From Octopus sinensis (Eukaryota): a stretch of DNA of 32,040 nt. Location: the NCBI RefSeq assembly GCF_006345805.1, contig NW_021829627.1, forward strand, positions 1-32,040, written 5' to 3'. The position numbers and the translations under genes were made by a program. Each line of letters opens with the position of its first letter. Positions within the stretch are counted from its first letter, which is position 1. The notes beneath the pieces are model-generated. The model did not search any database. It worked only from the letters and a program-made list of their open reading frames with translations, and was not told where the DNA came from. Of the stretch, positions 226 to 31,230 are shown in pieces.

Positions 226-800
226 GCAGGAATATGTCAACACGGATGACAACTTCCTACACTGTCTCCACAAAAAGGATTTTTTAAAATATAACAACAA
301 ATTAAATACACAAACGCAATTGATTTTTTACATTTTTTAATGTATTCCGGATATCAGTGGTACTGGGTGAGCGCATAGTTCTAAAGCTTTTATATCGATG
401 ATACCTTAATTCCTCGCAAATCCGTGTACTAAGTCTGACATTTCCCGAAAATCCTGCTATTATATTTTTCGAAAAAACTTCGATTTTATCGACTCTATTT
501 CAATCTACAAAATTAAAAAAATTAGTACATTAACTACTTCCATCTTTAAATTTCGTTGTTCTTTTAGAGTCTGCAGCAAGCAAAACTACTCCGCGGTATT
601 TGACTTAAAGTATTGTTGTTCCGCACTTAAACTAATAACAAGTTGAAAACAAACCTTCATAACCACACACTTGAAAAAATATTTCTTCCCTCTTTTTAAA
701 ACATTGATTTTTAGTTTTTCTCCATCCAATAAATGATTCAACGCAGAAACAACAAAAGACCCAAATGAATTTACCAAGGGGACATTAAGTTAATTTCCAA
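226..800 (-). pseudogene. Divergent proteasome beta-subunit-like gene, copy 1 (in-frame stop, 3' truncated)
   Basis: After removing a 23-nt intron (gtttgttttcaacttgttattag) the minus strand reads ...VVMK/FKCG-TTIL*VKYRGVVLLAADSKRTT, then NRVDKIEVFSKNIIAGFSGNV. This matches the beta-subunit N-terminus (G/T1, D17, K33-like, G47-like). There is a TAA at mature residue 5. Confidence 0.7.
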
Positions 801-1229
801 TGTCAAATCAGGTGTCTCATCGCACATTTCAGTAAACAGTAACTTGATCGACATGAACAATATTCACATTCCTTCTGTCCTCACTAAAAAAATGTCAAAC
901 TTATCTGATACTCAGGTCGTCAGTAAAGGTATGGTTCTTCACAAAATTGACAATTCACAGAGAGAGTTCCAAGTTCTTAGAGACCTCAGGAATCATCGTG
1001 ATTCAATTTCTCACTGACATTGGTAGGAAAAGCTTCTCGAAAATATAAATAAAATTCATATTTATTAAAATTAAAATTATTACACTATGGTTAACCTATT
1101 TTTAAAGGTAAGCCTAATAAATTATAACACGTTGATACATGTAGTTGACTTATTTTGTTTGTATTTTATATGTACTTTTCTACATTCTTATTTAATTTGA
1201 TTTGTAAGGAATAAATCTTTATGAACTTT

Positions 1230-1790
1230 CATTTCCTGATTACAGAATTTGAAATTTTATCATTTTCATCATTTTTTTGATTTTATTCCTTAAAAGTCAA
1301 TCTCTTATTATTTTGACATTTTTATAATGATTTTTTTTATATCTTTTTGAATTTTTTTACTTCATCTTTATTCTGATTTATCTATTAACAAGAAATCTAT
1401 TAAAAATAACAAAGAATCAAAAAAGGATCAAATAAAACTAAAATCAATCAATAGCAGACATCCAGAAAAATTAAGTCTTTGATTTTTTTGGCGTCTCTAC
1501 TTTCTGGCTATATCGTAATCCACGAAAATCACTAAAAATGCTTGTTGTCGAGGAAGCACACAACCTTGATTGATTTGTCTCTCGTATTTTTTAATGTATT
1601 CCAGATGTTAATAACACTGGGTGTATTTTATATTGATAATACATTAATTCGTGTATTAGCTTCACATTTCCCGAAAATCCCGCAAAATTGTTTGAAAAAA
1701 CTTCGATTTTTTCGACTCCATTTTTATCTACAAGATTAAAAAAGTTAATACGTTTCAAAGAATTTGAGTCGTACACATTTTCACTAAACG
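1230..1790 (-). pseudogene. Divergent proteasome beta-subunit-like gene, copy 2 (partial, degraded)
   Basis: Reads VYDSNSLK/intron/KNGVEKIEVFSNNFAGFSGNV. Bases 1590-1760 are a recognisable duplicate of 336-530. The T1 region is missing and there are multiple stops downstream. Confidence 0.55.
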
Positions 1791-1801
1791 AATTTCAGAA
1801 G

Positions 1802-2552
1802 TTATTGTAGTGGGGTTATCCCCACTAAACTAATTCCAAATAAAGATATTGTGTGAACTAAGATATTATTTATTAAAATATACTTTGGGAAAATCCTTCT
1901 GTTAATCGGTCCTTTTGCGCTGCATGTTTTATAGCATCGTGGGCTATTTTAATCGCCTCACTTTGCGTTATCAATACTCCGAGGTGACTGCCAATAATTA
2001 TACAAAAATACTGTGCGAATATCCACTGAAATGCCGAGTTTGTCCAGATCCCATAAAAAGGAATAAAGGAATCAATTTTAATTGTATAGATTCCACCTTT
2101 GAAAACACATACAAGAATCACGGTCTAAAAATATAAAAAAATAAAATATACCGACAATAGAATTGGAAGTGTATAATTTGCAAAAATTCCATGAATGAAC
2201 ATTACCAAATTTCCTGGATCCACATTATGGTCGAATCTAAATAACAAATTAATCAGAAAAATACAAATAATTAAGACGACATGCACCGAACAATTTCTCA
2301 TAAACGTGCATGTTCCCCGTGAACCCAATAATTGAGTTGTTCGTAATTTGAAATATTTTGTTTAACCTGTCATTATCTAATTTGTTAGTCCAACAATTTA
2401 TTACAGTTTTTGTTGGGAGTATTCGCATCTTGGGTTACTCTGCTATCTGCAGCAAGAACAACCCTTCCAAGATAGGGTATGGTCACCACAGTTGTCATAC
2501 TTATATGATTCTAAGACGAAATTAGAAAATTCAAAGCTACCATTCGAAACAT
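1802..2552 (-). CDS. Divergent proteasome beta-type subunit-like protein, copy 3 (apparently intact, several mini-introns)
   Basis: Manual splicing (introns of 24-30 nt) gives an open frame: MFRM/NHISM-TTVVTIPYLGRVVLAADSRVTQDANTPNKN/YNDRLNKIFQITNNSIIGFTGN...EAIKIAHDAIKHAAQKDRLTEGFSQ/IHTISLFG...LQ*. T1, D17-S-R, K33-like, G47-like and the C-terminal A...AI..A..RD-like helix all fit PF00227. The start codon is uncertain. Confidence 0.75.
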
Positions 2553-3229
2553 TTTTATCAATCTAACACGTTGGTATATTCATAAATATCACTTTAATCG
2601 AGACGTAGAATTATAACTACAACATCAAAGACGGTAGAGCATGAAATTGTAGTATGGTTTTAAGAAATAAGATCAAAGAAAAATTTATTCTCGCAAAATG
2701 GAGTTAGGTGGATTTTTTAAATTTAATTCGTCAAAAAGACTGGAATTTAGGCTAAACATCTGTTTTAGATCACTATAGTTCAAAATACAATAATTCAGTT
2801 TTGTACTATTGGATTAAAACAACTTTTTAATCTGATTTTATAAATTTTTTAGTTCCATCATTATGTTATAAACCATAAAGCCATGTTCTTCATCTTTATT
2901 GGTTTAGCACCCTTACTTATTTAGTTTAATTATTTTTACATTTTGTGCATATAAAATTTTTATTGATTATTCAGTTACTCGTTAAATTCAGTTAATCGCT
3001 AACTTTTGCCTTGGTCAAAAATTTGGCAAGTAAACGGGGTTTGACTTTATTTATATTCTAAAATTTTAAACTCTTCGCAAATGTATGAAAAATAGATTAT
3101 TCCTTACTCAAAATAATAAAACTTTAATGATATGAAATTAAAAATGACAAACATAAAGGGATCAGTTTGTCTATCTAGACAAGAGCTTAGAAATTTTTAT
3201 TATCAAATAAGCCATTAACCTTATCAAGA

Positions 3230-4060
3230 GAGCTTTTGGAAGTCCCCGGAATCTCTTTCATAGTTGAACCTACTGGGATCGATTGGGGAGATGGGAAAAA
3301 ACAGGACTGTATCACTGTGTTTTCTTTCAAGAGAGGAAACACATTTATTGTAAACCGCCCCTAAATAAATCGCCACAATTTCTTAATGCAAAAAGATGCG
3401 GAAGTACTCTTCACTTGTGGAGATCCCGTGAGGCCAATACGATGTCATCCGCATAAGATAGGATGGAATCATTATTGTCGGTAGGGGGCGGAAGATCTTC
3501 CAGGAAAAAGTTGAAAAGGGCCGAGGATAAAGAGGATCCCTGAGGTACTCTGTTGGACAGGAAATGATACGTAGACTTTAGGCCTCCAAGTCACACCCTT
3601 TCCCTTCTTCCACTTAAGAGGTGAGATCCATAGTTTGAGTTACTCTGAAAATATCTTTTTTGATAGAATCCTCCTTGAGACAAAGTCAAAGACTTTGTTT
3701 ATACCGACAGAACAAAGGAAACTTTTTAAGTGTTTCGGTTTGCTTGCAAATCCAGTAAGAATGAAATCAGTGAATGTTTTTAAGCATGTAGACGCGGACT
3801 TGATTTTAAACCTATATTGAAAAGACCTTTACGGTAAAAATTCTTTTATACTTCCAAGAACCATAAACCGGTATAAAAAATGCAAAGTCGTTTCTTTATA
3901 AATGGCTGTGTCCATAATGACGTATCACATTTGGGTTTATCGAAGTATCCAACACCTCTCACCGAAAAAAGAAAAGGTGCTGACCGTTTCTTCTGTTTGA
4001 GGGTAGCGTGTTGGATTTTTTCTCCTCATTATGTGATATTTTTGCATAGAACTTTATCAG
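3230..4060 (-). mobile_element. Degenerate LINE reverse transcriptase fragment (I/Jockey-like)
   Basis: Minus strand reads QYRFKIKSASTCL...INKVFDFV...RVPQGSSLSSALFNFFLEDLPPP...ILSYADDIVL (YADD at about 3441-3456). Stops and frameshifts are present. Confidence 0.85.
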
Positions 4061-4329: not shown

Positions 4330-5096
4330 AAATAACCAGTCAATTTCAAATTTTTCTTATATCCTTTCCAAGTTGAAATCTAAACTCATAATATTTTTGG
4401 AGTGTCTCAAAAATGTGTTTTGCGCTACATTTTCCAACTTATCCATCATTTCATACGTTTCTAATATTGTTGTTTTGTCCTCTGTCCCAATTCCATTATA
4501 AAATTCGCGACTGTTGACTAGATTTTGGTTTTCTTCAAATATTACTTCAGTTATTATTTCTTCCAGGACTTCTTCTCCGCAATTTTTTCTTCTCTACTTT
4601 CTTCAATTTTCTTCCAACAATTAATTATTGTTGTTTCTTTGACTTCCATCCATGTTTTTCTAATAAGTACCATAATCTGTGGCATATCTATATTTTTAAA
4701 AGATTTAGGATTAATTGTTGTATCTTCTTTCAAATTGAACATAAATTCAGTTGGGAAGTTTGTGTAATACACTTTAAAACATTTTATTATACCCATGTCT
4801 AGAAGTTGAATCGAAGATGTTGTGTTTTTCGGAAGAAAAAACAATTTAACATTTGAGTATTCCAATAAAGAATGGCATGTAGCATTATCCATCATTAAAA
4901 GTATTTTTCTATCTTGTGAGAGAAACTTGTTGACTTCATCTATTTGAACTAATCTTGAAATGACTGATCCTGTATTAATAAAAGAAGAAATGTTTTTTTT
5001 TATTCGGCAAATAGTGCCTTTGCTTATCTTGAATTTTTTTACAACTTCTCTTTCAGATGAAGTTTGTAGACACTTTGCAATTTTAATTTGTTTCAA
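4330..5096 (-). mobile_element. pogo/Tigger (Tc1/mariner, CENP-B-like) transposase remnant with an internal deletion
   Basis: The HTH segment EREVVKKFKISKGTICRIKKN is joined directly to the DDE_1 segment RKILLMMDNATCH...FFLPKNTTSSIQLLDMGIIKCFKVYY. The HTH-Tc5 domain and first catalytic region are missing. No TIR pair was found. Confidence 0.85.
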
Positions 5097-5151: not shown

Positions 5152-6697
5152 TGTCGCGACCCACGCTGGCGACCATCCCACGCTGGCGACCATCAGTTTG
5201 ACAGGTCATGACCTTCAGTTTGACAGGTGATTTAAACCGGAAAAAATTCATTTTAAGAAATGGTTTAGCGTCATTTTACAAAAAAAATATGGTTTCTCTC
5301 AAAAGATGTTAGCATGAAAAAAGCGACTCAATTTATCATTATTAATGATCGGTATATTTGCGACTCCTAACTCATAGTCTTTATCTAAAGGACGAGAATA
5401 ACCAAAAACACAATTTGGTCATTTGTCTGGACAATGAAATGGAGATGAGGACACTAGCATTCGCCATTCACCAAGAATCCCACTGGGGAATACGAAAGCT
5501 TCAGAAAAAGTGCAGTGAATTCTATTTCACTGTAAAACGTCCAATCATCGAACAAATTATAAAAGACTGTGAAATTTGTAAATTTGCCCTACCATTGAAA
5601 GTATTTAAAAAAAATATACCTAGGTGTCGGATTCTAATTACCATGTAACTGCAGGAAAACCCAACGAAAGATTCCAGGCGGGTCTTATTGATGTTAGAAG
5701 ATATCAAGAGTTTAACGATGGATCTAATTGGATACTGACAATTATTGACATCTACAGCAAATTTGTTGTCTGCAAATCTTTAAAAAATAAAACTGCTACT
5801 GGTAAGACTTGAAATTTAATTGAAGAAGTGGTGAATAAATTCCAAAAATTGTTTTATCAAATTGGATATTGTCAGATCTTGCAAACGGACAACAGGTTGG
5901 AATTCAAAAACCAACTTATGGCTCAACTATGCGAGGAATAAATTTGAAATAAATTAGGGTGTAATTGAGCGCTTTAACTAAATATTGACACGTGCTATGG
6001 CAAAACTTATGGATAAAGAAGGAACTAAAAATTGGAAACAATACGGCGGACATATTACGAACAAATTTCGACCTCTTTAAAAATCAAATTATACAACATG
6101 CTACTGAAACCGGTCTTATTGTACAATTTCTCTACATAAAAAAATACGTAAAAATTGGAAACAATTTTTAGACAAAGTAACTTTTTCCTATAATACGACA
6201 CACCACTCGGCGATCAATTAGACCCCCTTCAAAAGTTTAGGGGTATTTCTGGAATTAACACTGTGATTCATGAAATACCAGGTTATAATCTTATTTATAA
6301 TTTAGATGAAAATAACGAGGTATCGTTTGTCGAAGATGAACTTAATGGTAAATTTACGATGTATTTATTTTTAGAAACGAATAATAAAAGATTGTGGGAC
6401 GAATCCGTCATTAAAGCTACACAGATTTGAATCCCCATATGAAGAAAAGGGAAAAGTAAAAAATATAATGTCTAAACACAGATTAATGGTTAGTTGTTTT
6501 TCCTAACAAAATTTAGTTCGAATTACGAAATAGTTACTATGAATAGAGATAAAAAATGTTAAGTTTTTTTGATTTTTTAGCAATTATCTTTAGTCAGTAA
6601 TTAGTGTCAAACTATGTAGGTCGCCCTGTCAATCTTGTCAACAATGAAGGTCGCTCTGGTCGCCAGCGTGGGATGGTCGCCAGCGTGGGTCGCGACA
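5152..6697 (+). mobile_element. Ginger-like DNA transposon 1 (retroviral-type integrase, TIRs), degenerate
   Basis: 41-bp TIR TGTCGCGACCCACGCTGGCGACCATCCCACGCTGGCGACCA starts at 5152 and its reverse complement ends at 6697. 5-bp TSD TAATA on both sides. Integrase motifs: H2C2 (IHQESHWG...CEIC), PNERFQAGLID, ILTIIDIYSKF, LQTDNR, GVIERFN, YNTTHHSAI. Stops and a deletion are present. Confidence 0.88.
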
Positions 6698-7966: not shown

Positions 7967-9202
7967 ATGAATATAATTCGTTCAAACTTATTATTAAAAT
8001 ATTAATTTTATAGACGCCAAAAACAATGAATATGTTGAAATGGAAACTTCAAGCGACACCTGGATAGAAAATTTTGTTCCAGGGGTATTAATTACTTATG
8101 ACTCTCTTAAATTTAAATAGAATAACCAGTTTTATCAAGAATATCAGAATTATAAGATCCGAATGAAGTCTATTGATGGACCATTATCATATTATGGAAA
8201 TCAACATGGACGAATTTTTGATGAGCGTTCTACGGCATGATTATTTCATATGTAATTTAATAGTTTGATGAAATGAATAAAAATCAATATTTTGATGAAC
8301 CTTTTGGAGAATATTATCATGACATGAATAACCAAAATTTTTATAATTCTTACAAAGTAGTGATTATTTGATTAGCTTAAATTTCAATAGAATAACCAAA
8401 ATGATTTTGATCCCAATTTCGATCAACCTCTTGATTTGGAATATGCTCAGATGAATAAATCAAGAAGAAATATTCATTCAAGAGTCCTTAATTATATTAA
8501 TTTTAATAGAATAATCAAATTAATTTAGATACCAATTTAGATTCATTCTATGGATTAGAATTTGTTCAGAAGAATGAACCAAGGCGAGATATATTTTCCA
8601 CAGTTTTTAATTATATTAATTTAAATAGAATAATCAAGTTAATTTGAATCCCAATTCAGATCAACTTCATTATTTTGAATTTTGTCAGATGATTAAATCA
8701 TTTCCAACTATTCATTCAAGAGTCCTTAATTATATTAATTAAAATAGAATAAACAAATCAATGCGAATAGAAGTATTACTCTGCCAATGTTGAGTTCTCC
8801 TCCCAATGTAAAAATTATTTTGAATTTATTTAATTTGAATAGCAACATCAAAATCATTTAAATGATCAAAGTTTTGAATACAATTCAGAATTCACTGATG
8901 AACCAATTTTGGATAAAGTTTGTAGGTTTTAATCATTTTTAAGAGAGTTGAGCATTCTTTAAATGAACGAATCCGCAGGGATCAAGTCAAAAAAATATAT
9001 TTAAACATCGGCAAAATAGTATATGCACAGAAAGTTGGAAAACAAGTAAAATTACTAAACTAATTTGCAGGACTATCGCGACCATATTCGCCAAACAGCA
9101 AAAAAAGCTTTCTTTTTCCTTGACGAAATTTCAAATATTATCGCTGAGTATGAAGAAAGATTTTATGAATATATCCAAATGATGAAAGACTTTGGTCAGT
9201 AA
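7967..9202 (+). CDS. Putative divergent bHLH(-Zip) transcription factor with an Asn/Gln-rich repetitive N-terminus
   Basis: Removing phase-0 introns of 25-36 nt (one GC-AG) gives a continuous frame from about 8014 to TAA at 9200-9202. The C-terminus RVEHSLNERIRRDQVKKIYLNIGKIV...RDHIRQTAKKAFFFLDEI resembles the Myc/Max-type basic helix HN..ER.RRD.IK..F..L...V. The start codon is uncertain. Confidence 0.6.
8391..8747 (+). repeat. Three tandem 119-bp exon+intron units (93-nt exon + 26-nt intron)
   Basis: Exons 8391-8483, 8510-8602 and 8629-8721 each encode 31 aa starting NNQ. The introns are nearly identical (gtccttaattatattaatt...aatag). Confidence 0.85.
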
Positions 9203-10101: not shown

Positions 10102-10227
10102 AAATTAATTAATGAAAATTTATTTAAATATTAGAGGAAAAACTAAAAAAATGAACTATGCCGATTTTGTAAATATTATTATAGATTTTTTTAAATAAAA
10201 TTTTGAATTTTTTAATCGGTTGTGTGG

Positions 10228-11316
10228 ATGGACGGTCACGTTGGGATGAGAAAATACGCAAAATTGAAGGACTTCGAACTCCCTCGCTCTGAGATGGAGT
10301 CCGTAGCCTTCCTTCAGGAGGTTGGAATCATTCCAACCGAAAAGAAATGCGCCAAAAGACATCCGATGATCTTAGAGCGAGATGGTACAACTTGGGTGTG
10401 CGATAAAAGCGAGTGTCGAATTTCAAGTTCTGTCCGAAACGGTGTAATAAGAGAGTACTTTATTTTTAGGTACGTGGCTCGAAGGCACGACAGTGTCCTT
10501 AGAATCTTGTATTCGTTTTATTTATATGTGGAGCTTCGACAGACACACCATTTTATGGTGTAGGCGTCAACTGGAATGGAGTGGCCAAACGATATGTAAT
10601 TGGTCTCACTCGCTGCGGGAAGTATGTGCTGCATATTTAGCAAATTGTCCGAACAAACTGATTGTTATATTACATTATTAGATTGCATAGGTGGAATTGA
10701 AAATGTCGTAGAAGTTGACGAAAGTATGTTTTCGAAAAGAAAAAATAATGCGGGACGGATTCTCCCTCAACAATGGGTGTTTGGGGGAATCTGTCGTGGA
10801 ACAAAAGACTGTTTCCTGGAGATGGTACCAGATCGCTCCAAAAGAACGTTAACCGCAGCGATACAGCGAAATATCGCACCGGGTTCAGTGATACACTCTG
10901 ACAAATGGAAGGGTAATTGTAATTACTTTATTCTTGTTAATAGGTTATTCAACCCCAGATCTAACTGCTCTTGGATATGTGCATCTTACAGTAAATCACA
11001 AGTTTATTATAATTCATTTATAAATTTGCAGACGAAATTTTGTAGACCCGGAGACCGGTGCACATACCCAGACTGTTGAGAGGTTCGTGTAGCAAAAATT
11101 ATATACAAAAATATAGAATGTGGAGGAACGCAAAATGGCGCAATAAGAGACAAAGAGGAACCGCACGCCACTATATGGGTGAATACTTTGCAGGTATTAA
11201 ATATTCAGATTTAATTTGTAGAATTTTTATGGAGAAGGCAAGTGAGCCATTTGGACAACGCATTCGACGAATTTTTAGACGCAATCGTGCAATGTGCCTA
11301 TTTTCGTGATTCATGA
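10228..11316 (+). CDS. Merlin/ISXO2-like DDE transposase, 7 exons, about 300 aa, open after splicing
   Basis: Predicted GT-AG introns at 10442-10469, 10647-10681, 10913-10943, 11002-11031, 11083-11116 and 11194-11221. The spliced frame reads ...RNGTWLEG...VVEVDESMF...QQWVFGGI...IHSDKWKGY...[30 protein letters not shown]...YFAEFLWR...RDS*. All three catalytic residues (D, D, E) are present. Confidence 0.88.
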
Positions 11317-14359: not shown

Positions 14360-16406
14360 ATGGATGATAGTAACTACATTCAGAAATATGAGCGCATTTT
14401 ATCAGAGCGACGTGCAAGATTAAGATATTTGGCAGACAAAATACAGTTATTCGACAGCGAAATGAACATCCCAAAGTGAATAACTCAATACATTTGTAGA
14501 CAACCATCTGTTGTTCCCCAAACACCACAAAACAAAGAAAACGTCCCCAGCCCCAGAAAAGAGACCAAACAAACTCACAATCCTTTCAAATTCGTCACTC
14601 CAATCCCCCCAAAACCCACCGAACAGCTGTTTCAGCCCCCTTTGGGTACTAATTTCCCCAATACATAGCAGATGTCCAACATGCTACCCCAGAGAGGCAA
14701 GAACGTGGCCCAATTAAAGGTCACGTAGCTGAAATAGTGCGACAAATCGAGTTACTTGGAGATAAATACCACCAAACGGAAGTCAGACCCCCACAATCAA
14801 ATGTCACCCGTCAAGACTCCCCTCAAACTGTATATCCAGACCAATATTGTAGTCTGATGAAGACACAGAAAGCCCATCGGTTGACTTGTCATCCCAGCCA
14901 GTGAAAGACTCTCCTCAAACTGTAAATCCAGCCAAATATTGTAGTCTGATGAAGACACAGAGAGCCAATCGGTTGACTTGTCATCCCAACCAGTGAAAGA
15001 CTCGCCTAATATTGTAAATTTATACGAATATTGTAGTCTGATGAAGAAATGGAGGGCAAATGGGTAGACATGTGTAGAGAGAAGTGTAATTGTGACTTGT
15101 CTGCATTGAAGGATTCATATGTGGAGGTGTCATCGACAGTGCGGGATATAGTGATGTGTGCTGATGGAGTGAAATATCAGTCGATATACCCATCGTCATC
15201 CCAACTAGTGAAAGGTGAGTGTTGTGATGTATTCAGACATGCTGGAACACTCCCAAGTGATGAAGGTGGTCCACAACACAGTCCATTCTGAAAAGGACTT
15301 GACAGAGGGACACCTCCGGGCATCCTTGGAAATAGAGGAGGGAGTGATAAACCAAGTGATCAAGGCATTGGGGACATGTGGAAGGCACCACACCCCGTCC
15401 ATCCACGCCGAGTGTTCTCGTCTGCTGTTGGTGGCCAGTATATGTCAGATTGATGATTGCCAGTACATCGAAAGGGGGCAATTCTCACACATTTGGAGAG
15501 GAGGATTCTCAGGTCGAATCCCTTTTGCTTTATTATTAAACTGAATGACATTCGACTGCAATTGAAGCAGCCCCTGTCCGACAGAACGCACTATTATGTG
15601 TGTTTGCTCAAACATGGCCACACAGTCCTGGCTACCGAGATGAGGTGGTCTGCCGAGTTTGTTGGCCACTCCTCCATCTTCTTTGCCGACGAGTTCACAC
15701 TGTCCAACCTCCCCGTTGACTTCCAACTGGTCTTGGAAGTGTTTGTCCTCGTCCTCCCCCAACAAAAGCACAGTTTGGTGGCCAAAATGACTCCCCTGTT
15801 GAGTAGTGTGCTTGTGTGTATGGTAGAGAGGAGGAGTAATCGCTTTGTGCCTAAATCCTTCGCGTCGTTGGGGTCCGTCAGTTTGTCCGTGGAGGAGAAT
15901 GGACGGAGGATTATACAACTTCCGCGTCTTCCCTCCACCTGTTTGTTGAATGGATTGATTGGACTTAACTTTGACTGTTCGATAATATCGTCCAAAGTAC
16001 TCAGATGTTTCCTCGTTGTGTTGTGCCGTGATTTATAGACCTTCCGCGAGTCCAACTCGAGTTGGGATCGACGTTGGTGTTTCATGTGTGAGGCAGTTCT
16101 CAAGATGTGGCATTACCCCGAGGATGAGCGTTCTGGCAAGGTTGTGTGTGTTGTCCATTCTAGATTCCAATTCGAAGGATTGACTTTCTCAACAGTCTGG
16201 ATGGCCTCCCTCTCCTATTTCGGGGATGGTTTGTCCACGGCCTTTCACATTCGAGGTTCGGTTGAGGGAGAGTCGTCGTGAGGTTGGTGTGGCCAGGTGA
16301 TTGTAGGTCGTGTTTGGTCTCTACTGACTCCATGGATGTGATGATGGATATGCTCGAGTTGTTGAATAACCTTTGGGAGCAATTGTTCTTTGAGGCGCTG
16401 ACTTAA
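14360..16406 (+). CDS. ANLN: Anillin-like protein (RhoA-binding/anillin homology domain + PH domain)
   Basis: About 11 introns of 22-26 nt (for example 14476-14499, 14646-14668, 14830-14852). Motifs: NQVIKALGTC...AECSRLLLVA, LNDIRLQLK...YYVCLLKHGHTVLATEM...LPVDFQLVLEVF, and PH CFL/TFRE..SWDRRWCF...LKMWHYPEDE...CPRPFTFEV. One or two apparent single-base frameshifts at about 16205-16310 (possibly sequencing errors) make the 3' end less certain. Confidence 0.88.
14810..15050 (+). repeat. Tandem 92-bp exon+intron units in anillin (69-nt exon + 23-nt intron)
   Basis: Exons 14853-14921 (SDEDTESPSVDLSSQPVKDSPQT) and 14945-15013 (SDEDTESQSVDLSSQPVKDSPNI). Three related introns (gta.at...aatattgtag) lie at 14830, 14922 and 15014. 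Confidence 0.85.
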
Positions 16407-18335
16407 CTAAAGTGTGGTTATTTCATCGTTGTTTTATATTTGCAGACTAAGTTAGGAGTTTTAATGATACAGCCAGTTGTCTTACAGAGGTAGGATTTCA
16501 ACAACCACCCCCTGTGGGTGGCAAATTGTACTTTAGCAGGCTAGTTTTTCTACTAAATGCATTCATTTAATGTTTTGTCGCATTAAGGTGGACTGAGATG
16601 ACACTTATTATAAACAAAAGGTGTCCATATCAGGATATTAATTACAATTTGGGATTGACGATCGAAAGGTCATTTCTCAGTAAGTCGAACTTAGTGCTTA
16701 ACATATGTTATTGACGATTTTTGAGTGTTTTTGTGCATTGGGCCATCAACGTATTATGGAAAACAATCCATGATTTGTTTATCGCCTAGTCAGATTTAAT
16801 CGTGATTAGCCATGCCGCAAGATTTAAACAACATGTTGACATCTCGCTATTCGGCCACACTTTTTTTATAAGATCAAGACAGAAAGAGAACATGTTATCA
16901 AGAAACTAACTAATTCAAATGAATGTGTCTCTGCTTCATCTTGTCCCCTTTTTTTGTAGTGTGGCCGATGAAGACATCCGGTTACGCAGTGAGATCACTG
17001 ATGAGGGCGTCAATTCGGGTTCCACATTAGATGCATGGATGGAGCCTTCCTTTAGCCGAAGTGATAACAGTGGAATTCCAATAAGTACTCCACCACCCGG
17101 AATGAATCAGATTGGTCAAAATAAATCTCAAACTACGATTACCGGTTAATTAAACAGTATATAAAACAAATATTCCGGCGATGCTAATCCTCCTAATGGT
17201 TGGCAGTGTAAACACTAACTTGTATAGAATACCTCTACTCACTTTACTCGCCACTTTCATTCACTCTGAGAGAATAAAACTATACAAGACAATAAAGAAG
17301 AGATTCCTGTTGGCACTGTCGTATACAACTTCTGCAAGGGACTGTGTGCAATGCAGATACTACACAGATATTAAGTATTCAAAGATGTATTTCTCGGCTA
17401 ATTATTTGGAGAATAATGGTTTAAATGAATATAACTTAATTAAATTAGGTGGTTGATCGAATAGACTACTACGACGGACCTCGTTCTGGATTTAAATATG
17501 GTGTTATATTCTTAGAAATCACACTTCTAAAAGATTACAAAGCATACACAGTCGAAATATATATAACAGTAAGAACTGGTGAACTAAAGTGATAGGTCCT
17601 GGACATAAATGACAACCCCCCATATTCCCAAGAAATACACGACTCATAACACTGGGAGGATTATCAACTGGGTTAATTATCCACTTCCCGAGAGCTGTGG
17701 ATAAAGACTCGGGGGTGAATGCACAGACACGGTATGAAGTGCTGGGGGATAGTCGTTCTCCCTCACAAATAACAAATCATCCCCCACTCTTGTATGCCAC
17801 TCCTCCCTCACTCCCCGCTCCCCCCATTAACCTGCGAGTCTTTGCCTTTGACCAACTCGACATACACTACTGGTCATTCATGGACATTGCCATCATATTC
17901 AGATCCGCCTACAACACTCCCATTCAGTTCTACGACGTCATCCTCAAAAAAGTCCCGGGAAAAGGAAAACATTTGATCACAATCCAACCCACGGACGAGG
18001 AGATCGCAAAATACGGAATGCCAACGTATTCAAATACAACCATCCACGGAAAATTTTTTATTTCATATGACGGAGAGATTAAACACTCCGGAACATATAC
18101 AGAGTTGGATGATGTATTTGATGTGGATGTGAAATACACCAACAACAGAGTGGGAGTGTATACAATCCAAGTGAAGACGATTGAAGAGAAGGCCACATTG
18201 AAATGGGTGAATGCTGGAGTTTTCTGTGTTATATGCAGTGTTCCCTCTAATGCTGCGCGCGTGCGCGTGCGCGCAGCAGTTTTGCACCTTGCTCGCAGCG
18301 AACTTTTTTTTCTGCGCAGTAGAAGTATAATATTA

Positions 18336-19599: not shown

Positions 19600-21590
19600 A
19601 CGAAAACGTGTCTATAATATTGATATGAGACTTAAGAAAATTCTCTCTTCTTTTAAGCCAGAATGGTTGATAGAGTACGTCGAAACCTTAACACCCGATT
19701 CAAAAATTCCCCAACATTGCAACTGGGTGATATTTTTAGTTTTTCCGAAGACTGCGGAGTTTTTGTAAAATATGTGGCGACGCTAAAGCGACTTGTGATT
19801 TTGCGAGTGGAAAAACCTGGGATATATGGAAATTGGATTATCTGAAGAGACATATTACCCATAAAATTCATTCAGATTCAATAATAAAATTAAGAAGAAT
19901 TCGAGCAGGAACTGGAATCAGCTGCTTGCTCACAGAGTCTAAGGATGACCGACAGATGAGATTCAAAATGAGTGATCGTGCACGAAGTAAAATTGAAAAA
20001 GTGAAAATTCTCATTGACAATGTTATTTTGGCTCTCTCCATGAATGCTTCATTACTTTCTGTTATGAATATACATGATCATATGGCAAAATATGTAGAAC
20101 TTCCTGATAGCTGGCGAAGTAAAAATTTGCATTTGAGTTTGTTGAATGCATCGACTACGTGGTCAAAGAGATATGTATGCAGGAAATTAGAGAGTCTCGG
20201 TTCCATACACTCATTGTGGACGAAAGCACAGATATATCCGTAACCAAAATGCTTATTATATATATTAAATATCGTCCTACGGGGACAAATTATCACAAAA
20301 CAGTTTTTGCTAGCATAATGAAACTTACAAGTTGTGACAGTAAATCTATTTTCATTGCAATCAAGAAATTCTACATGACAAACAATCTTGATTTTCAAAA
20401 GATGGTAATGTTTACATCAGATGGGGCATCCGTTATGCTAGGGAGAAGAAATGGCGTGGCATCACTGATCCGTGCTGAGGTTCCTCATCTTACTGAACAA
20501 CATTGCGTCGTTCACAGACAAGATCTAGGGATCGATGATGCATGGAAAAAAATAATCTTGTGAAAAATATTGAAATATTACTCCGGACTGTTTATACTGT
20601 TTTCAGTCGATCAAGTATAAAAAAAAGCTGCATTTCAGGACCTGCTAATGTTGTTGTTGAAGATGTCGTTTCATTTAAGCCACTAAATGAAGTGAGATGG
20701 ATGTCTCGGCATTTTGCTGTTAAAGCTTTGATAAACTACACAATTTTAATTGAATATTTCAAGAAACAGGTTGAAGATGATAATGATCCGATTGCAAAAT
20801 ATTGCTTAAAACAACTTCAAAATCCTCTTATTCATGTTGCTTTAACTGTCTTAAATGAAATTTTGGCTGAATTAGCAGATTTGTGCACAGTTTTCCAAAG
20901 AAGCTGTATATCGACCATAGAAGCAGTACAGTTTGCCAGAGCAAAAATTTCGAAGCTGAAATCTCAATATTTGGATGGAAATGAAATTTACTGGAGTGAC
21001 AGTGTGAAGATGTTGTTATCAACAACTGGTTATGGAGATACAAATACAGATGAAATCCTATGCTTTATCGAGCATGTTTATCTGCATTTACAAGAAAGAT
21101 TTCCAGCTGACGAATTAAGAGAATGGGTAGCATTTGACACTCAAGCAATTCAAAATCAGACAAACTTTGAATTTGGAAAAGAGGAGATAATTAAATTAGC
21201 GAAAAAATATGAAAATTTACTCTCTTCAGAAGTCCCACTCATAAAACTGCAGTCGGAATATACAGATCTCAAGTTTATTTTAAAAGAAAAACTGCACTCT
21301 GGTGCTTTGAAAACATTTGAAGATGTAATTTACTATATACTAGCGGAGAAAAAATTTCAGCCACTGCAACATTTGTGGATATTTGTGGCACATTTCAAGC
21401 GTCGAGTGCTGATGCTGAACGTGGATTTAGTTTGATGAACTGTATCAAAACTAAACTACGTAATAGACTTGAGATTGACCATTTGGAGATGATCATGCGA
21501 ATCAAATTCTATTTAACAAGTGGGAATACAGTGGATCTTGATCGAGTATACAAATTTTGGATACAAAATAAAACAGAAGAGAATATCCAA
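19600..21590 (+). pseudogene. hAT transposase (ZNF862-like), frameshifted
   Basis: Fragments CKICGDAK...WKLDYLKRH, TLIVDESTDISVTKMLIIY, MFTSDGASVMLGRRNGVA, QHCVVHRQDL, NEVRWMSRH and ASSADAERGFSLMNCIKTKLRNRL (hAT dimerisation domain) are spread over different frames. Confidence 0.9.
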
Positions 21591-22253
21591 TTGACTAGAC
21601 CTATTTTTTTAACCATTGGTTTTTTAATTGTAAAATTTTCCCCCCCAAAAATTTTTTGCACACGTCACTTTATAACGCTGCACAATGCAATGTGCCCAGC
21701 GCGCATAGCTACCACCACTCGCTTAGAGGGAACACTGGTTATAGTTGACAAGAAGACAGATTAATAGACCGATTGAGTGTGAGTGAAGTAGTTCAGAAGG
21801 GAGTAGAATGTGGATGCAGTACTAATTCGGAGACTGTTTGTTTTCAGTTGTTTCTTCGACCGATCTGATTCTCCTTGATTATTCGAGTGTCATCCCCACA
21901 ATTAGTGTCAACGTAAGTTGTGTGTGTTTGGAGGACATGATTTGTTTTCGATTCTGGGATGCAAACCAAAAGAATATACAATTACTGTACAGGTTGGGAT
22001 ATATTATTTATCATCACATATTTTCATTTTGCATGCTTCTTAAATTTATGATAGATTATACCTAAAGATTACATCCACACCACAATTATTGAAAACTAGC
22101 TCGGCAGCTCGCTTCGCTCACCGCGACCTAGCTCCTGCGGGGGCTGTTTCATCAACAACTATAAGTTTATGTAGATGTATAAAATAAATTCTAGCTTTAC
22201 GAAAAAACTTAACTAAATAGTTAATATTTTACGCAAATTCTTCTGATGGCGCT

Positions 22254-22555
22254 GTCAATTGGTGGTAAATTGTGTTAATGATTGTGCTAATGTGGGTTCA
22301 ACTATCAAAGTGTTTTTCAAAATCTGTTAATTGCATACTCTAATTCAAGGTCGTGCGTCAATTGGTGGTAAATTGTGTAATGATTGTGCTAATGTGGTTT
22401 CAACTATCAAAGGTTTTCAAAATCTGTTAATTGCACACTCTATTCAAGGTCGTGCGTCAATTGGTGGTAAATTGTGTTAATGATTGTGCTAATGTGGTTT
22501 CAACTATCAAAGTGTTTTTCAAAATCTGTTAATCACACTCTATTCAAAGTCGTGC
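22254..22555 (+). repeat. Tandem repeat, about 100-102 bp x 3
   Basis: Units start GTCAATTGGTGGTAAATTGTG at 22254, 22356 and 22456. Confidence 0.95.
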
Positions 22556-22626: not shown

Positions 22627-23620
22627 TAAAATTTTTTTAATTTTTTTGGGGGAAGGTTTTAAGGACCACATCAATGAAGTCGAGGACATCGTAGTTGTTC
22701 ATTTTAACCAAAATGAGAAAAATTTTTTTTTAATTTTTTTGGGGGAAGGTTTTAAGGACCACATCATGTAAGTCGAGGACATCGTAGTTGTTCATTTTTA
22801 ACCAAAATGCAGAAAATTTTTTTAATTTTTTTGGGGGGAGGTTTTAAGGACCACATCATGTAAGTCGAGGACCGTAGTTGTTCATTTTAACAAATGCAGA
22901 AAATTTTTTTTAATTTTTTTGGGGGGAAGGTTTTAAGGACCTCATCATGTAAGTCGAGGACATCGTAGTTGTTCCATTTTAACCAAAATGCAGAAAATTT
23001 TTTTTAATTTTTTTGGGGGAAGGTTTTAAGGACCTCATCATGTAAGTCGAGGACATCGTAGTTGTTCATTTTAACAAAATGCAGAAATGTTTTTTTAATT
23101 TTTTTGGGGGAAGTTTTAAGGACCTCATCATGTAAGTCGAGGACATCGTAGTTGTTCATTTTAACCAAAACGCAGAAAAATTTTTTTTTAATTTTTTTTT
23201 GGGGGAAGGTTTTGAGGACCTCATCATGTAAGTCGAGGACATCGTAGTTGTTCATTTTAAACCAAAATGCAGAAAATTTTTTTAATTTTTTTTTGGGGGA
23301 AGGTTTTAAGGACCTCTCATGTAAGTCGAGGACATTGTAGTTGTTCATTTTAACCAAAACGCAGAAAATTTTTTTTAATTTTTTTTGGGGGGGAAGGTTT
23401 TAAGGACCTCATCATGTAAGTCGAGGACATCGTAGTTGTTCATTTTAACCAAAACGCAGAAAAATTTTTTTTAATTTTTTTGGGGGGAGGTTTTAAGTAC
23501 TCATCATGTAAGTCGAGGACATTGTAGTTGTTCATTTTAACCAAAACGCAGGAAAATTTTTTTAATTTTTTTTTGGGGGGAAGGTTTTAAGGACCTCATC
23601 ATGTAAGTCGAGGACATCGT
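22627..23620 (+). repeat. Tandem repeat (minisatellite), about 92-93 bp x 11
   Basis: Unit AAAATTTTTTTAATTTTTTGGGGGAAGGTTTTAAGGACCTCATCATGTAAGTCGAGGACATCGTAGTTGTTCATTTTAACCAAAATGCAG. Copies differ mainly in homopolymer length. Confidence 0.97.
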
Positions 23621-23648
23621 ATTGCCAATTTGAAGTTGGTGGTGACAC

Positions 23649-23707: not shown

Positions 23708-24899
23708 CATACCATTTTATTATTAAGATATATGAGAATATGCCCCTATGCCCCTGTTTATATGGAAATAGTGAAGATAAAAATATATAGAAATCCAAAT
23801 TTTGATGATCGATTATTTAATAAAAGTTTAATCACATCAAAGAGGGTATTTGACCGCGAAATCGAAAAGGTTTGATGTTGACCTTTACTTTCCCAATAAT
23901 ACCAAATCAATAAAACGATTGAAATTATGGACTTGAATGACAATTCTCCAGTGTTTACTAACAAGACATGTTCCCTCATTACATTGATAAATACTCGTGA
24001 ACGATACTAACAAATTTATTTGCTGAGGATGCTGACCTGGAATGAATGGAAGAATCAATATGAAGTCATTTCGGTAATGAGTATAATGAAGAGATTGGAG
24101 TCTGTGATCCATACACAAACTACGAGGATGCATTTTATATTGATCCGAATTCGGGACAGTTAGACCTAAATCATGACTTTAAAAATGTGGGATATTTCTT
24201 ATTAATATACAAGCTACTGACTCAGGGCCCCAAAAATTATTCGCCAATATTCACTGTTTTGTTCACGTGGTTGAATTTTCATCTATTTTTGACTATTCAT
24301 TCAACGGGAGTAGTGCAGTGCAGAATCAGACTATTAAATTGTCACAAAATCAATTTGGACAAACTTTTCTGAGGAATACAGCTACTTTGTGGAGTTATTT
24401 CTTTGACGATTTTATATTTACAATTCCCGATGATTCCTCACGGTATTTCAACGTTGACCTTTATTCCGGAAATGTCAGTTACGTTGGCAAAATTCAACCG
24501 TCTCTGACAAACAACTATACTCTGACGATAACTGCTTTTTCACGAAAGCATTCTTACCTCAACTATACTTTCAGCGTCAATTTGGTATTCAATGATTATT
24601 CGAGTCTCCACAAATCAGTGGACGGGAAATATATTGCGATTATTATTCCTTTTGTTATACTTTTGATTAGCTTGCTCTATTTTGGCGTTATTCATAAGGA
24701 AAAATGTAAAATATACGGCCATACATGAAACTGACAAGACTTAAGATACTAACAATGACCTTTAATCATTTTATTTCAATTATGGACTTTTCTTGTTTTA
24801 ATCACAATGTTTTACAAATAATTTATGTTAATTGCATGAAAATAGCAGAGAAAGTATGAATCATTTGTTACAATGAATAAAATAATTTTATTGTGTTTA

Positions 24900-29439: not shown

Positions 29440-31230
29440 GTGTGGTCCGTGGGCAGCTTGGAACGCAAGAATCTGATATTCCCCTCCAAATTCGGTGTCG
29501 CAACCGGATTGTCCTGCTAATCTGTTAACTCTACGGGCTATCATCGATCAAGTAACGCAGGTGGACATGATCAAATGGCGAATGAAGTGGTTAACGTTTC
29601 TCGAGCAAGATTCAAAAGAATACCACGTGGTGGATGGCCTATGTTTACTCAGGCTTTTAACGAAAAGTTCCTCACGTCCAAATCTGTGGCGAATGTGAAG
29701 AGTCTGGCTAAGATGACGGGAACAAAGTCTAACTCTCCAATGGATCAAGAAAAAGAATCACAAGACTGAAATCTCTAATTTAGAGATTGCTCATTGAATT
29801 TTCTTCCCAAATAGGGCAAGTAAAATCTATCTCTAGAAAAAACGAAAGCCGACCAAAAAGTCCCATACTTAAAAAAGAAATATTGTCTGGAATAAATGCA
29901 GTGATTAATGAATATATAAAGACCAACCTCCTGTCAATTTGAATGATATCACCGATATCGTTTATGCTGCACAGCTGACATACCAAGCTCTCACAAAATA
30001 CTCTCCTAAGAATAACAACTGGAAAGGAATAATGGAAGCAAAACTAATTAAACTTAAAGAACAATACGAACAGACTAATACACTTATTGATCAAAAAGGA
30101 AGTTTGATAATGCAACGAGGGATACGCTGAGTGAATGTGGATATCGAAAGGAAGAAAGGAGAACTTGGAAGAATTTTGCTTGCATTGGAGACGAAATAAA
30201 GATTGTTGAGAAGAAACTTCGACTCCATGATGCAAGAAAAGAATTTCGGAAACAGAATTGGTTTTTTGAATTGAATCGGCGTTGTTTCTATCGCAGTTTA
30301 AATGATGAGAGAAAGAGTGCAGAGTTCATGTTTAATAACAGTGAATGTTTTTCATATTGGAAAAAATATGGAGTAGAAATGAGAAGAGCGATAATGTGTT
30401 ACATATTAACAAGAGAGTGACATGGGCAGAGGATACATTTGCAGAGTTTAGTAAAGAAAGCATCCTTGAAACAATTAAACAACTCCCAAACTGAAGAGCT
30501 AGCGGTTGTGATGGGGTGTATAATTTCTTTCTAAAAAATGACCTCAATCCATGATCACTTGTGTGAAGAACTAGTCAAGATAATCCATGGTGAATACATA
30601 CCGGATGAGTGGTTCTACACTGGAATCACATATCTCATCCCAAAGAAAGATATTTGTCAGGACCCAAAGATTTGAGACCAATTACTTGTATGTCTAACCT
30701 ATATAAGCTTGCAACGAAATGTGATAACAGGAAGTTGGGAGATTATATTGAGGCATATAATCTGATTGCCGATAATCAATTGGGAACTCGGCGAATGTGT
30801 CAAGGGGCAAGGGAACAAGCAATTCTTAACCGGTGCATTCACAAGCAAAACGGAAATAATTTGTTTTCTACCTGGATTGACGTAAAGAAAGCGTTCGATT
30901 CGGTAGATCACGAATTTCTGTTCCAGGTGCTTGAAAACTCCGGACTCCCTACCTGGATTGTGAATTTTGTGAAGAACCTTGTAACGAAGTGGAGAATAAA
31001 GCTACAAGTGTAATTCTGAATCATAATGAAATCGGAGAGGTTTAATTGGAAAGAGGCATACTCCAGGGTGATTCCTTGTCACCTCAAATCTTTGCCCTGG
31101 TGATGGATCCTCTTAGTAGAATTCTGAATGCTAAGTACCCAAAAGTGATGATTGATAACCAAGATCAGGGTTGTATTACATATACAACAAATCACTTACT
31201 GTTTATGGATGATCTAAAGGGATCTCGACG
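29440..31230 (+). mobile_element. Non-LTR retrotransposon, R4/Dong-like clade, 3'-truncated and degenerate
   Basis: NDITDIVYAAQ, NWFFELNRRCFYRSL, ASGCDGVYNFFLKK, WFYTGITYLIPK, RPITCMSNLYK, NQLG...GAREQAILN, WIDVKKAFDSVDH, RGILQGDSLSP and HLLFMDDLK. The sequence ends right after the catalytic motif, with no endonuclease domain. Confidence 0.88.

Follow-up and report, generated by a model that had tools for sequence, protein, structure and literature searches.

The complement of 14 core proteasome genes is believed to be almost constant across eukaryotes, with any additional copies usually remaining similar to their parents. The locus analysed here raises the question of what a proteasome beta-type gene is doing outside that set. 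It lies on contig NW_021829627.1 of assembly GCF_006345805.1, filed under Octopus sinensis, of which we analysed positions 1 to 32,040 of the forward strand; this whole stretch of 32,040 nucleotides (nt) is called the window below. An initial annotation of positions 226-2552 had described three minus-strand, head-to-tail copies of a highly divergent beta-subunit-like gene, numbered 1 to 3, that emerge only after very short introns are removed. The reading that we favour, with a probability of roughly 0.55, is that the locus holds a lineage-specific, very divergent beta-type N-terminal nucleophile (Ntn) hydrolase family in a process of birth and death, with copy 3 as its one surviving and possibly active member. 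Below, we present the evidence for copy 3, discuss how it might work, and weigh this reading against its alternatives.

Gene model and homology of copy 3

On the minus strand (2552/2498-1802; Table 1), copy 3 forms a complete gene of 5 or 6 exons without any interruption. It is assembled from short open reading frames (ORFs) by removing four, optionally five, introns, every one of which has the form GTA...TAG. The spliced coding sequence of 588 nt is open over 195 codons, and the protein reaches 203 amino acids (aa) if the optional exon 0 is included. Each of 200,000 shuffles of the coding sequence with matched composition contained at least one stop, in agreement with the initial description of copy 3 as open from end to end. 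The exons have a GC content of 36.6% and the introns of 15.6%, with 21-26% in the flanks, and the window in general is AT-rich (about 24-47% GC per kb). It had also been noted, rightly, that the cluster is invisible in an ORF track: the longest unspliced ORF within 226-2552 is 82 aa. Splicing of intron 4 supplies the two final beta strands that the fold calls for, but the Pfam score gains little from it (33.2 to 33.8 bits). As to the very short propeptide that had been assigned to copy 3, a leader of 9 aa (MFRMNHISM) precedes Thr1 only when exon 0 is used; otherwise, the Met at position -1 may itself be the start codon. The model with exon 0 is evidently the one behind the initial annotation, whose range ends at 2552.

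Introns of this size are genuine for the genome carrying copy 3, as they are also present in two unrelated genes of the window. In a cadherin-like relic, removal of a 27-nt GTAAG...ATAG segment (17569-17595) restores ...AYTVEIYIT/VLDINDNPP, the slash marking the junction. In an anillin-like gene, a candidate 21-nt intron of the form GT...TAG (16018-16038) contains an in-frame TAG, and its removal gives CFLV/TFRESNSSWDRRW (CFLV/TFRE...WDRRW), which matches GFLTIFEDVSGFGAWHRRW in human anillin. It has been reported that among animals introns of less than 30 bp are found only in myxobolid myxozoans and Dicyema japonicum, their 5' sites being cut down to GTa, and that the myxobolid Henneguya salminicola has a median intron length of 27 bp and 29% GC (2026 paper, PMC13644364). 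Because introns of this kind are reportedly confined to these animals, the genes with 21-30-nt introns most likely belong to a myxobolid myxozoan or a dicyemid, and such a parasite is the most likely source of the window.

Judged by its sequence, copy 3 is a genuine, highly divergent homologue of the proteasome beta subunits (Ntn hydrolases, MEROPS T1). The comparison of the spliced protein with the Pfam family Proteasome (PF00227), which the initial annotation had proposed, gave a match of 33.8 bits (E 3.3e-8; best stretch residues 2-54), above the gathering cut-off of 22.4 bits. Its first 69 residues, encoded by exons 1 and 2, score 27.8 bits on their own and thus also pass the cut-off. Among the NCBIfam models, archaeal beta subunits rank highest (28.8 bits), ahead of bacterial beta subunits (20.3 bits) and HslV (about 12-13 bits). 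BLASTP against the beta subunit of Thermoplasma acidophilum (100% identical to PDB 3c91_H), our reference for residue mapping, aligned residues 2-182 of copy 3 colinearly with residues 1-179 at 25% identity (pairwise E 3e-4). Finally, a profile made from the three copies found beta-type proteasome subunits and HslV as its best matches in the PDB (top E 1.5e-5). The Pfam match, the BLASTP alignment and the three-copy profile bear out the earlier description of the genes as very divergent and beta-subunit-like.

Copy 3 is assignable to none of the seven canonical beta orthogroups, since no subunit type is a clear best match. In a single-sequence phmmer search of the PDB, the top matches were mostly proteasome beta chains, all of them weak; the best was Plasmodium beta7 (E 0.016), with beta2 and beta3 close behind. 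The three-copy profile leans weakly to beta1: beta1-type chains (a plant chain, Leishmania beta1 and PSMB6) rank slightly above Plasmodium beta7, beta2, archaeal beta and HslV, by a margin of a few bits.

Homology over the full chain is likely, and rests mainly on the N-terminal third. The C-terminal half of copy 3 aligned with that of the Thermoplasma subunit in the right register, with a score above 98-99% of shuffles (p about 0.008-0.017), and with Archaeoglobus it scored above about 90% of shuffles. An AlphaFold model of exon 4 alone was of low confidence (predicted local distance difference test, pLDDT, 66); its strand-strand start and last long helix fit the expected pattern and its middle part does not. 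A Foldseek search with this low-confidence model returned no significant match.

Searches of large sequence collections yielded no relatives. The spliced 195-aa protein matched nothing at E <= 1 in a word-indexed search of 5.8 billion clusters, and exon 4 had no match among metagenome contigs. When exon 4 was compared with 1.84 billion representatives by a full HMMER scan, four matches came up, none of them a relative: two were translated tandem repeats, another had no aligned stretch, and one was a short chance motif in a bacterial-looking protein of 540 aa (P0015, E 9e-5). That motif, SYGIWINSANQWVFG, occurs twice in the protein and is matched by residues 120-134 of copy 3 (FYGIWTNSAFQWIFA; window positions about 1996-2040, minus strand); we judged this to be a chance match doubled by the repeat. 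The cadherin-like ORF likewise had no match, and an exact look-up of an ORF from the window yielded no record. It should be noted that the proteins of the source genome are apparently absent from these collections, so that the lack of matches says little about paralogues within the same genome. In a protease survey of transcriptomes, 14 homologues of family T01 were counted in Myxobolus cerebralis, 11 in Kudoa, 22 in Sphaerospora molnari and 14-15 in other, non-myxozoan cnidarians (PMC7296530), which indicates that these numbers can vary between species. Since the canonical T01 subunits of a myxobolid were readily recognised in that survey, copy 3 is probably an extra gene rather than a canonical subunit.

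Catalytic residues and a possible mode of action

Residues of copy 3 are numbered here from Met1 and were mapped by BLASTP and global alignment. Residues T1, E17 (Asp in most subunits), R19, K33 and G47 of the Thermoplasma subunit correspond to T2, D18, R20, K38 (past a 4-residue insertion) and G49 of copy 3; GGI 102-104 corresponds to GGI 107-109; and S129, D166, S169 and G171 correspond to S127 (in TNSA, which takes the place of TGSG), D169, T172 (a conservative change) and G174. By alignment, the Thr1/Asp17/Lys33 set of an active beta-type subunit is thus present in copy 3. Both methods agree with the initial annotation, which had listed T1, D17-S-R, K33 after an insertion of about 4 aa, and G47 as kept. 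The same annotation held that the GSG motif with Ser129 is lacking. The motif is indeed altered to TNSA, but the loss of the serine itself is probably wrong and depends on the alignment: TNSA (125-128) falls on TGSG, and Ser127 on Ser129, in BLASTP and in three of the four global gap settings, whereas MAFFT places the region elsewhere. The catalytic residues are retained while about 70-75% of the other positions differ from those of beta subunits.

Based on these residues, copy 3 would encode a threonine Ntn hydrolase of about 21 kDa that works now or did so until recently. Its Thr1 could be exposed in either of two ways: through removal of the initiator Met by methionine aminopeptidase (with the start at 2498, as in HslV), or through cleavage after Met-1 of the 9-residue leader. 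The substrate would then be attacked by the O-gamma of Thr1, with Lys33 (K38) and Asp17 (D18) serving as a proton relay and with Thr1 kept in position by Ser127, Asp169 and Thr172, the task of Ser129, Asp166 and Ser169 in 20S beta subunits. To our knowledge, every active member of the proteasome beta family works only inside a ring assembly. Taken together with the identity of about 25%, this speaks for copy 3 as part of an assembly of its own, or as a non-20S enzyme, more than for a canonical position in the 20S ring; incorporation into that ring is unlikely.

Dead duplicates and competing explanations

The annotated tandem, head-to-tail arrangement stands, with copy 3 intact. To speak of three copies says too much, however: copies 1 and 2 are broken fragments with stops, frame shifts and missing exons. 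Copy 1 reads MKFKCG/TTIL, a stop, VKYRGVVLLAADSKRTTKFKDGSN, a second stop and NRVDKIEVFSKNIIAGFSGNV..., its exon 2 also being given as a stop followed by NRVDKIEVFSKNIIAGFSGNVRL.... The two in-frame stops are a TAA at 607-605 (mature codon 5) and a TGA at 502-500 (the start of exon 2), and no alternative splice sites bypassing either of them were found. Copy 1 keeps the canonical Gly-1/Thr1 junction, the AADS motif and Asp17 at exactly position 17, and, once X is put in place of the stops, its PF00227 score of 27.4 bits exceeds the cut-off. Its 30-nt intron is in phase 1, at a position identical to that of intron 1 of copy 3.

Copy 2 is a duplicate, about 200 nt long, of the tail of copy 1 intron 1 and exon 2, with 71% identity overall and 85% over a 68-nt core. 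Its exon 2 encodes KNGVEKIEVFSNNFAGFSGNVKLIHEL..., followed by a frame break and then ...NTLKNTRDKSIKVV, and indels of 3, 1, 11, 16 and 4 nt shift the frame. The upstream part (1829-1752) retains at most a TTI remnant without the GVVLAADS exon, and overlaps the 3' end of copy 3. Taken alone, copy 2 does not match PF00227; it is homologous to copy 1 at the DNA level. Neither tblastn nor a reading of all frames found exons 3-5 of copies 1 and 2, and the window holds no further copies of the family. Between copies 1 and 2, the ratio of the proportions of non-synonymous and synonymous differences (pN/pS) is 0.29 (5.5 synonymous and 5.5 non-synonymous changes in 22 ungapped, hand-picked core codons); given the tiny sample and the chosen block, this is a weak hint of past constraint on the two of them.

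Copy 3 and copy 1 are only about 31% identical at the amino-acid level and yet have their intron positions in common, so that the family is an old one. The cluster is thus an old tandem array of one intact gene and two disabled partial duplicates, arranged head to tail. Of the rapid birth and death that had been proposed, the birth and death can be recognised in this pattern of one gene beside two dead duplicates, but the low identity with conserved intron positions does not fit the word rapid. Homopolymer errors of long reads were considered as a general cause of the frame breaks and rejected, because the intact anillin-like ORF (274 codons) and the intact copy 3 speak against them. The defects of copy 1 are substitutions, not indels; in copy 2, an error could still account for the one shift of 1 nt.

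Positions 1-225 of the window form a GC-richer stretch (about 48% GC by eye) that abuts copy 1 beyond an (ATT)n-like run at about 205-225 and is not repeated elsewhere in the window. Possibly this stretch was inserted there and cut copy 1 short, and the array might extend past the window edge.

The family has expanded by tandem duplication and is now decaying, copies 1 and 2 being dead partial copies. Several observations weigh against the reading that we favour. No orthologue or paralogue of copy 3 is known outside the window in the collections searched. The C-terminal half alone gave no significant match in Pfam or the PDB, and hhalign of the three-copy alignment against two archaeal beta subunits, all very shallow alignments, covers the first 57 columns only. 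In the protein, Gly-1 of the beta propeptide is replaced by Met, with a leader of at most 9 aa, NSA is read for GSG, and Glu for Gly170. Furthermore, an N-terminal Thr exposed by removal of Met is a typical target of NatA acetylation in the eukaryotic cytosol, and acetylation of the N-terminus inactivates propeptide-less yeast beta subunits. Full activity of copy 3 is doubtful because of this inactivation in yeast, the missing Gly-1 and the NSA in place of GSG. Finally, copy 3 lies among dead genes and transposons, and its GC content at third codon positions (GC3), 0.34, is lower than that of the conserved anillin-like gene (0.60); the low value could reflect either relaxed constraint or local composition, the anillin-like region and its intron being GC-richer too.

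Part of this evidence would also suit the possibility that all three copies are relics, copy 3 being a pseudogene, or a gene free of constraint, still waiting for its first disabling mutation. We consider this possible, at a clearly lower probability than a surviving gene. Of the three copies, two are demonstrably dead; they lie in a graveyard rich in transposons, where a cadherin-like gene also has a broken frame, and the GC3 of copy 3 is nearer to the value of non-coding DNA than to that of the anillin-like gene; the altered GSG motif and Gly-1, and the lack of any annotated or homologous protein in the collections searched, point the same way. On the other hand, long neutral drift in AT-rich DNA (27-37% GC) would very probably have broken the 195-codon frame or one of its four or five splice-site pairs, all of which are intact; the catalytic residues are kept even though some three quarters of the remaining positions are unlike those of any beta subunit; and decay, evident in copies 1 and 2, is seen nowhere in copy 3. 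The opposite concern, that the gene model is an artefact of splice sites picked to fit a chance similarity, is hardly credible. The sites were picked by eye, and the C-terminal half is not independently significant; but exons 1 and 2 alone pass the Pfam cut-off, copy 1 passes it independently, copies 1 and 3 agree in their intron positions, the same type of intron occurs in two unrelated genes of the window, and exons and introns differ sharply in GC content.

It is also conceivable that copy 3 is simply a fast-evolving orthologue of one canonical 20S subunit, beta1-like, and thus an ordinary proteasome gene beside pseudogene duplicates. The lean of the three-copy profile to beta1-type subunits in the PDB and the retention of T1, D17 and K33, as in active subunits, would fit, as would the high divergence described for myxozoan proteins and a BUSCO completeness of only about 52% (PMC13644364; PMC7296530). 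However, a plain similarity search was sufficient to recover the full 14 T01 homologues from a myxobolid transcriptome (PMC7296530), whereas copy 3 reaches only 33.8 Pfam bits and a best single-sequence E of 0.016 in the PDB; moreover, it has no Gly-1 propeptide, and the preference for beta1 over beta7, beta2 and archaeal beta amounts to a few bits. We therefore regard an ordinary orthologue as improbable. Still less probable is a role as a stage- or tissue-specific substitute for one of the canonical beta subunits of the 20S particle, in the manner of the immunoproteasome or thymoproteasome, although copy 3 is beta-type, has the catalytic residues and arose by duplication. Known replacement subunits stay near the subunit they replace, so as to fit the same ring contacts, and plant proteasome paralogues diverge only moderately, under purifying selection. 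Copy 3, in contrast, is about 25% identical to any beta subunit and lacks the Gly-1 propeptide used in 20S assembly and autolysis. The alternative proteasome subunit envisaged in the initial annotation, known examples of which are far closer to their parents, is unsupported, and so is any link to parasitism.

Related systems and genomic surroundings

How does the surviving gene compare with known systems? With the catalytic 20S beta subunits (beta1/PSMB6-type, and archaeal PsmB) copy 3 has in common the PF00227 match, the N-terminal TT(V/I)...G.V.LAADSR with Thr1, Asp17, Arg19, Lys33 and Gly47, the GGI strand, an EA..IA..AI..A..KD-type helix leading to Asp166, a length of about 195 aa, and colinearity with the Thermoplasma subunit. 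It differs from them in its identity of about 25% and lack of an orthogroup, the Met for Gly-1 with a leader of 9 aa or less, the 4-aa insertion before Lys33, NSA for GSG, Thr for Ser169, Glu for Gly170, and the lack of detectable relatives.

In the case of HslV (ClpQ), the likeness lies in a Met-Thr-Thr start without a propeptide and in the short chain (about 175-195 aa), and HslV is among the profile matches (20.2 bits). Eukaryotic HslV is organellar, of bacterial origin, and found in some protists; we know of no HslV in animals. Copy 3 scores far below the cut-offs of the HslV models (NF003964, 12.7 bits against 137; TIGR03692, 12.1 bits against 157.75) and below its own score with the archaeal beta model, and no HslU-like partner or other AAA+ gene was seen in the window. 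Lineage-specific paralogues, such as the immunoproteasome subunits beta1i, beta2i and beta5i, beta5t, insect testis-specific subunits and plant duplicates, likewise arose by duplication of beta genes, for which tandem or segmental copies and birth and death are typical, but those paralogues keep a propeptide and a clear assignment to a parent, and copy 3 does neither. Anbu, BPH, connectase and newer families are beta-like Ntn proteins outside the 20S particle, forming their own assemblies or acting as monomers (Fuchs, Alva and Lupas 2021, PMC8665760). All of these are prokaryotic, and copy 3 has no Pfam or NCBIfam match to them. The spliceosomal introns of copy 3 mark it as a resident eukaryotic gene.

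A beta gene that keeps its catalytic residues, falls beyond orthogroup assignment, lacks a Gly-1 propeptide and stands beside dead siblings would be unusual, and would speak of a proteasome fold that is being repurposed or discarded in a strongly reduced animal parasite. A bolder idea, which we hold to be unlikely, is that copy 3 survives from a group of stand-alone, propeptide-less threonine proteases of an animal lineage that budded from a 20S beta subunit (beta1-like) and work outside the proteasome as HslV- or Anbu-like homo-oligomers. If true, this would be the first non-20S enzyme of the proteasome family native to an animal, and in a parasite with extreme genome reduction. Should the copy 3 protein prove active and parasite-specific, it could become a candidate target for drugs, separate from the proteasome of the host. 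A more general implication is that genes cut by introns of 21-30 nt escape ORF tracks, so that, for the genomes of myxobolids and dicyemids, gene counts and reports of conserved genes as missing may be in error.

The remainder of the window is summarised in Table 1 together with the three copies; the mobile-element fragments dispersed over it are decayed. The neighbours of copy 3 (copies 1 and 2, the fragment of a long interspersed nuclear element (LINE), the hAT transposase and the cadherin-like relic) are full of stops and frame breaks, and the anillin-like gene, 13 kb away, is the only clearly healthy host gene seen.

Table 1. Positions of the three beta-type copies and of other features in the window
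Feature	Position	Strand	Details
Copy 1, pseudogene	312-660	-	exon 0 ATGAAG 660-655; 23-nt intron; exon 1 631-535; 30-nt intron; exon 2 504-~312
Copy 2, pseudogene fragment	1557-1829	-	possible exon 1 remnant 1829-1752; 24-nt intron 1751-1728; exon 2 1727-~1557
Copy 3, optional exon 0	2541-2552	-	ATGTTTCGAATG = MFRM; in frame, then 30-nt GTA..TTAG intron; putative use
Copy 3, optional intron 0	2511-2540	-	30 nt, GTAGCTTTGAATTTTCTAATTTCGTCTTAG
Copy 3, exon 1	2405-2510	-	(NHIS)M-TTVVTIPYLGRVVLAADSRVTQDANTPNKN; Thr1, Asp17, Arg19; alternative start ATG 2498-2496
Copy 3, intron 1	2377-2404	-	28 nt, phase 1; position and phase common to copy 1
Copy 3, exon 2	2265-2376	-	YNDRLNKIFQITNNSIIGFTGNMHVYEKLFGACRLNYL; Lys33 and Gly47 equivalents
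Copy 3, intron 2	2237-2264	-	28 nt; weak DNA repeat (family D3) ties it to the equivalent spot in copy 1
Copy 3, exon 3	2152-2236	-	FDHNVDPGNLVMFIHGIFANYTLPILLS
Copy 3, intron 3	2125-2151	-	27 nt
Copy 3, exon 4	1884-2124	-	80 aa; GGI, TNSA (Ser129 equivalent), QKDRLTEG (Asp166 and position 169 equivalents)
Copy 3, intron 4	1858-1883	-	26 nt; unspliced protein would finish ...GFSQSIF, stop, at 1873
Copy 3, exon 5	1802-1857	-	IHTISLFGISLVGITPLQ; TAA stop 1804-1802; overlaps 5' remnant of copy 2
Decayed LINE reverse transcriptase fragment	3174-3725	-	directly upstream of copy 3, same strand; RVT_1 40 bits; several in-frame stops
pogo/Tigger-type DDE_1 fragment	4554-5096	-	
Tandem array	8380-8762		119-nt unit x 3.2
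Retroelement integrase zinc-finger fragment	5358-5648	+	
IS1595/Merlin-like transposase	10222-11079	+	
Tandem array	14813-15047		92-nt unit x 2.6
Anillin-like gene	15457-16300	+	Pfam Anillin 51.7 bits; about 30% identity to human anillin 4xh3_A, E 2.8e-14, including the PH domain start
Cadherin-repeat-like relic	17460-18240 and 23790-24728	+	motifs VLDINDNPPIFPRN, AVDKDSGVNAQTRYEV, IMDLNDNSPVF, AEDAD-GMNGRIN-YEVIS; terminal membrane-span-like stretch
hAT-family transposase	19833-21764	+	DUF4371 and hAT dimerisation domain; broken into four ORFs
Tandem array	22254-22555		100-nt unit x 3
Tandem array	22632-23621		93-nt unit x 10.7; 91% matches; spurious 117-aa minus-strand ORF
Second reverse transcriptase fragment	30609-31013	+	

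The cadherin-like relic contains at least 5 frame breaks, several of which lie at short homopolymer runs (17617-17622, 24031-24067), and it could be a true pseudogene or the product of local assembly indels. No Pfam Cadherin match was found in it at E <= 0.1, its name resting on motifs read by eye. The hAT element sits between the two parts of this relic. Its closest relatives, from scorpion, fish, salamanders, Ciona and coelacanth, are 40-54% identical, and one metagenome fragment is 73% identical; the element looks widely and patchily distributed. No transfer RNA or Rfam family was found in the window. The segments at 25.3-27.8 kb and 31.3-32.0 kb are repeats of 73-80% identity and seem to represent additional copies of a single element.

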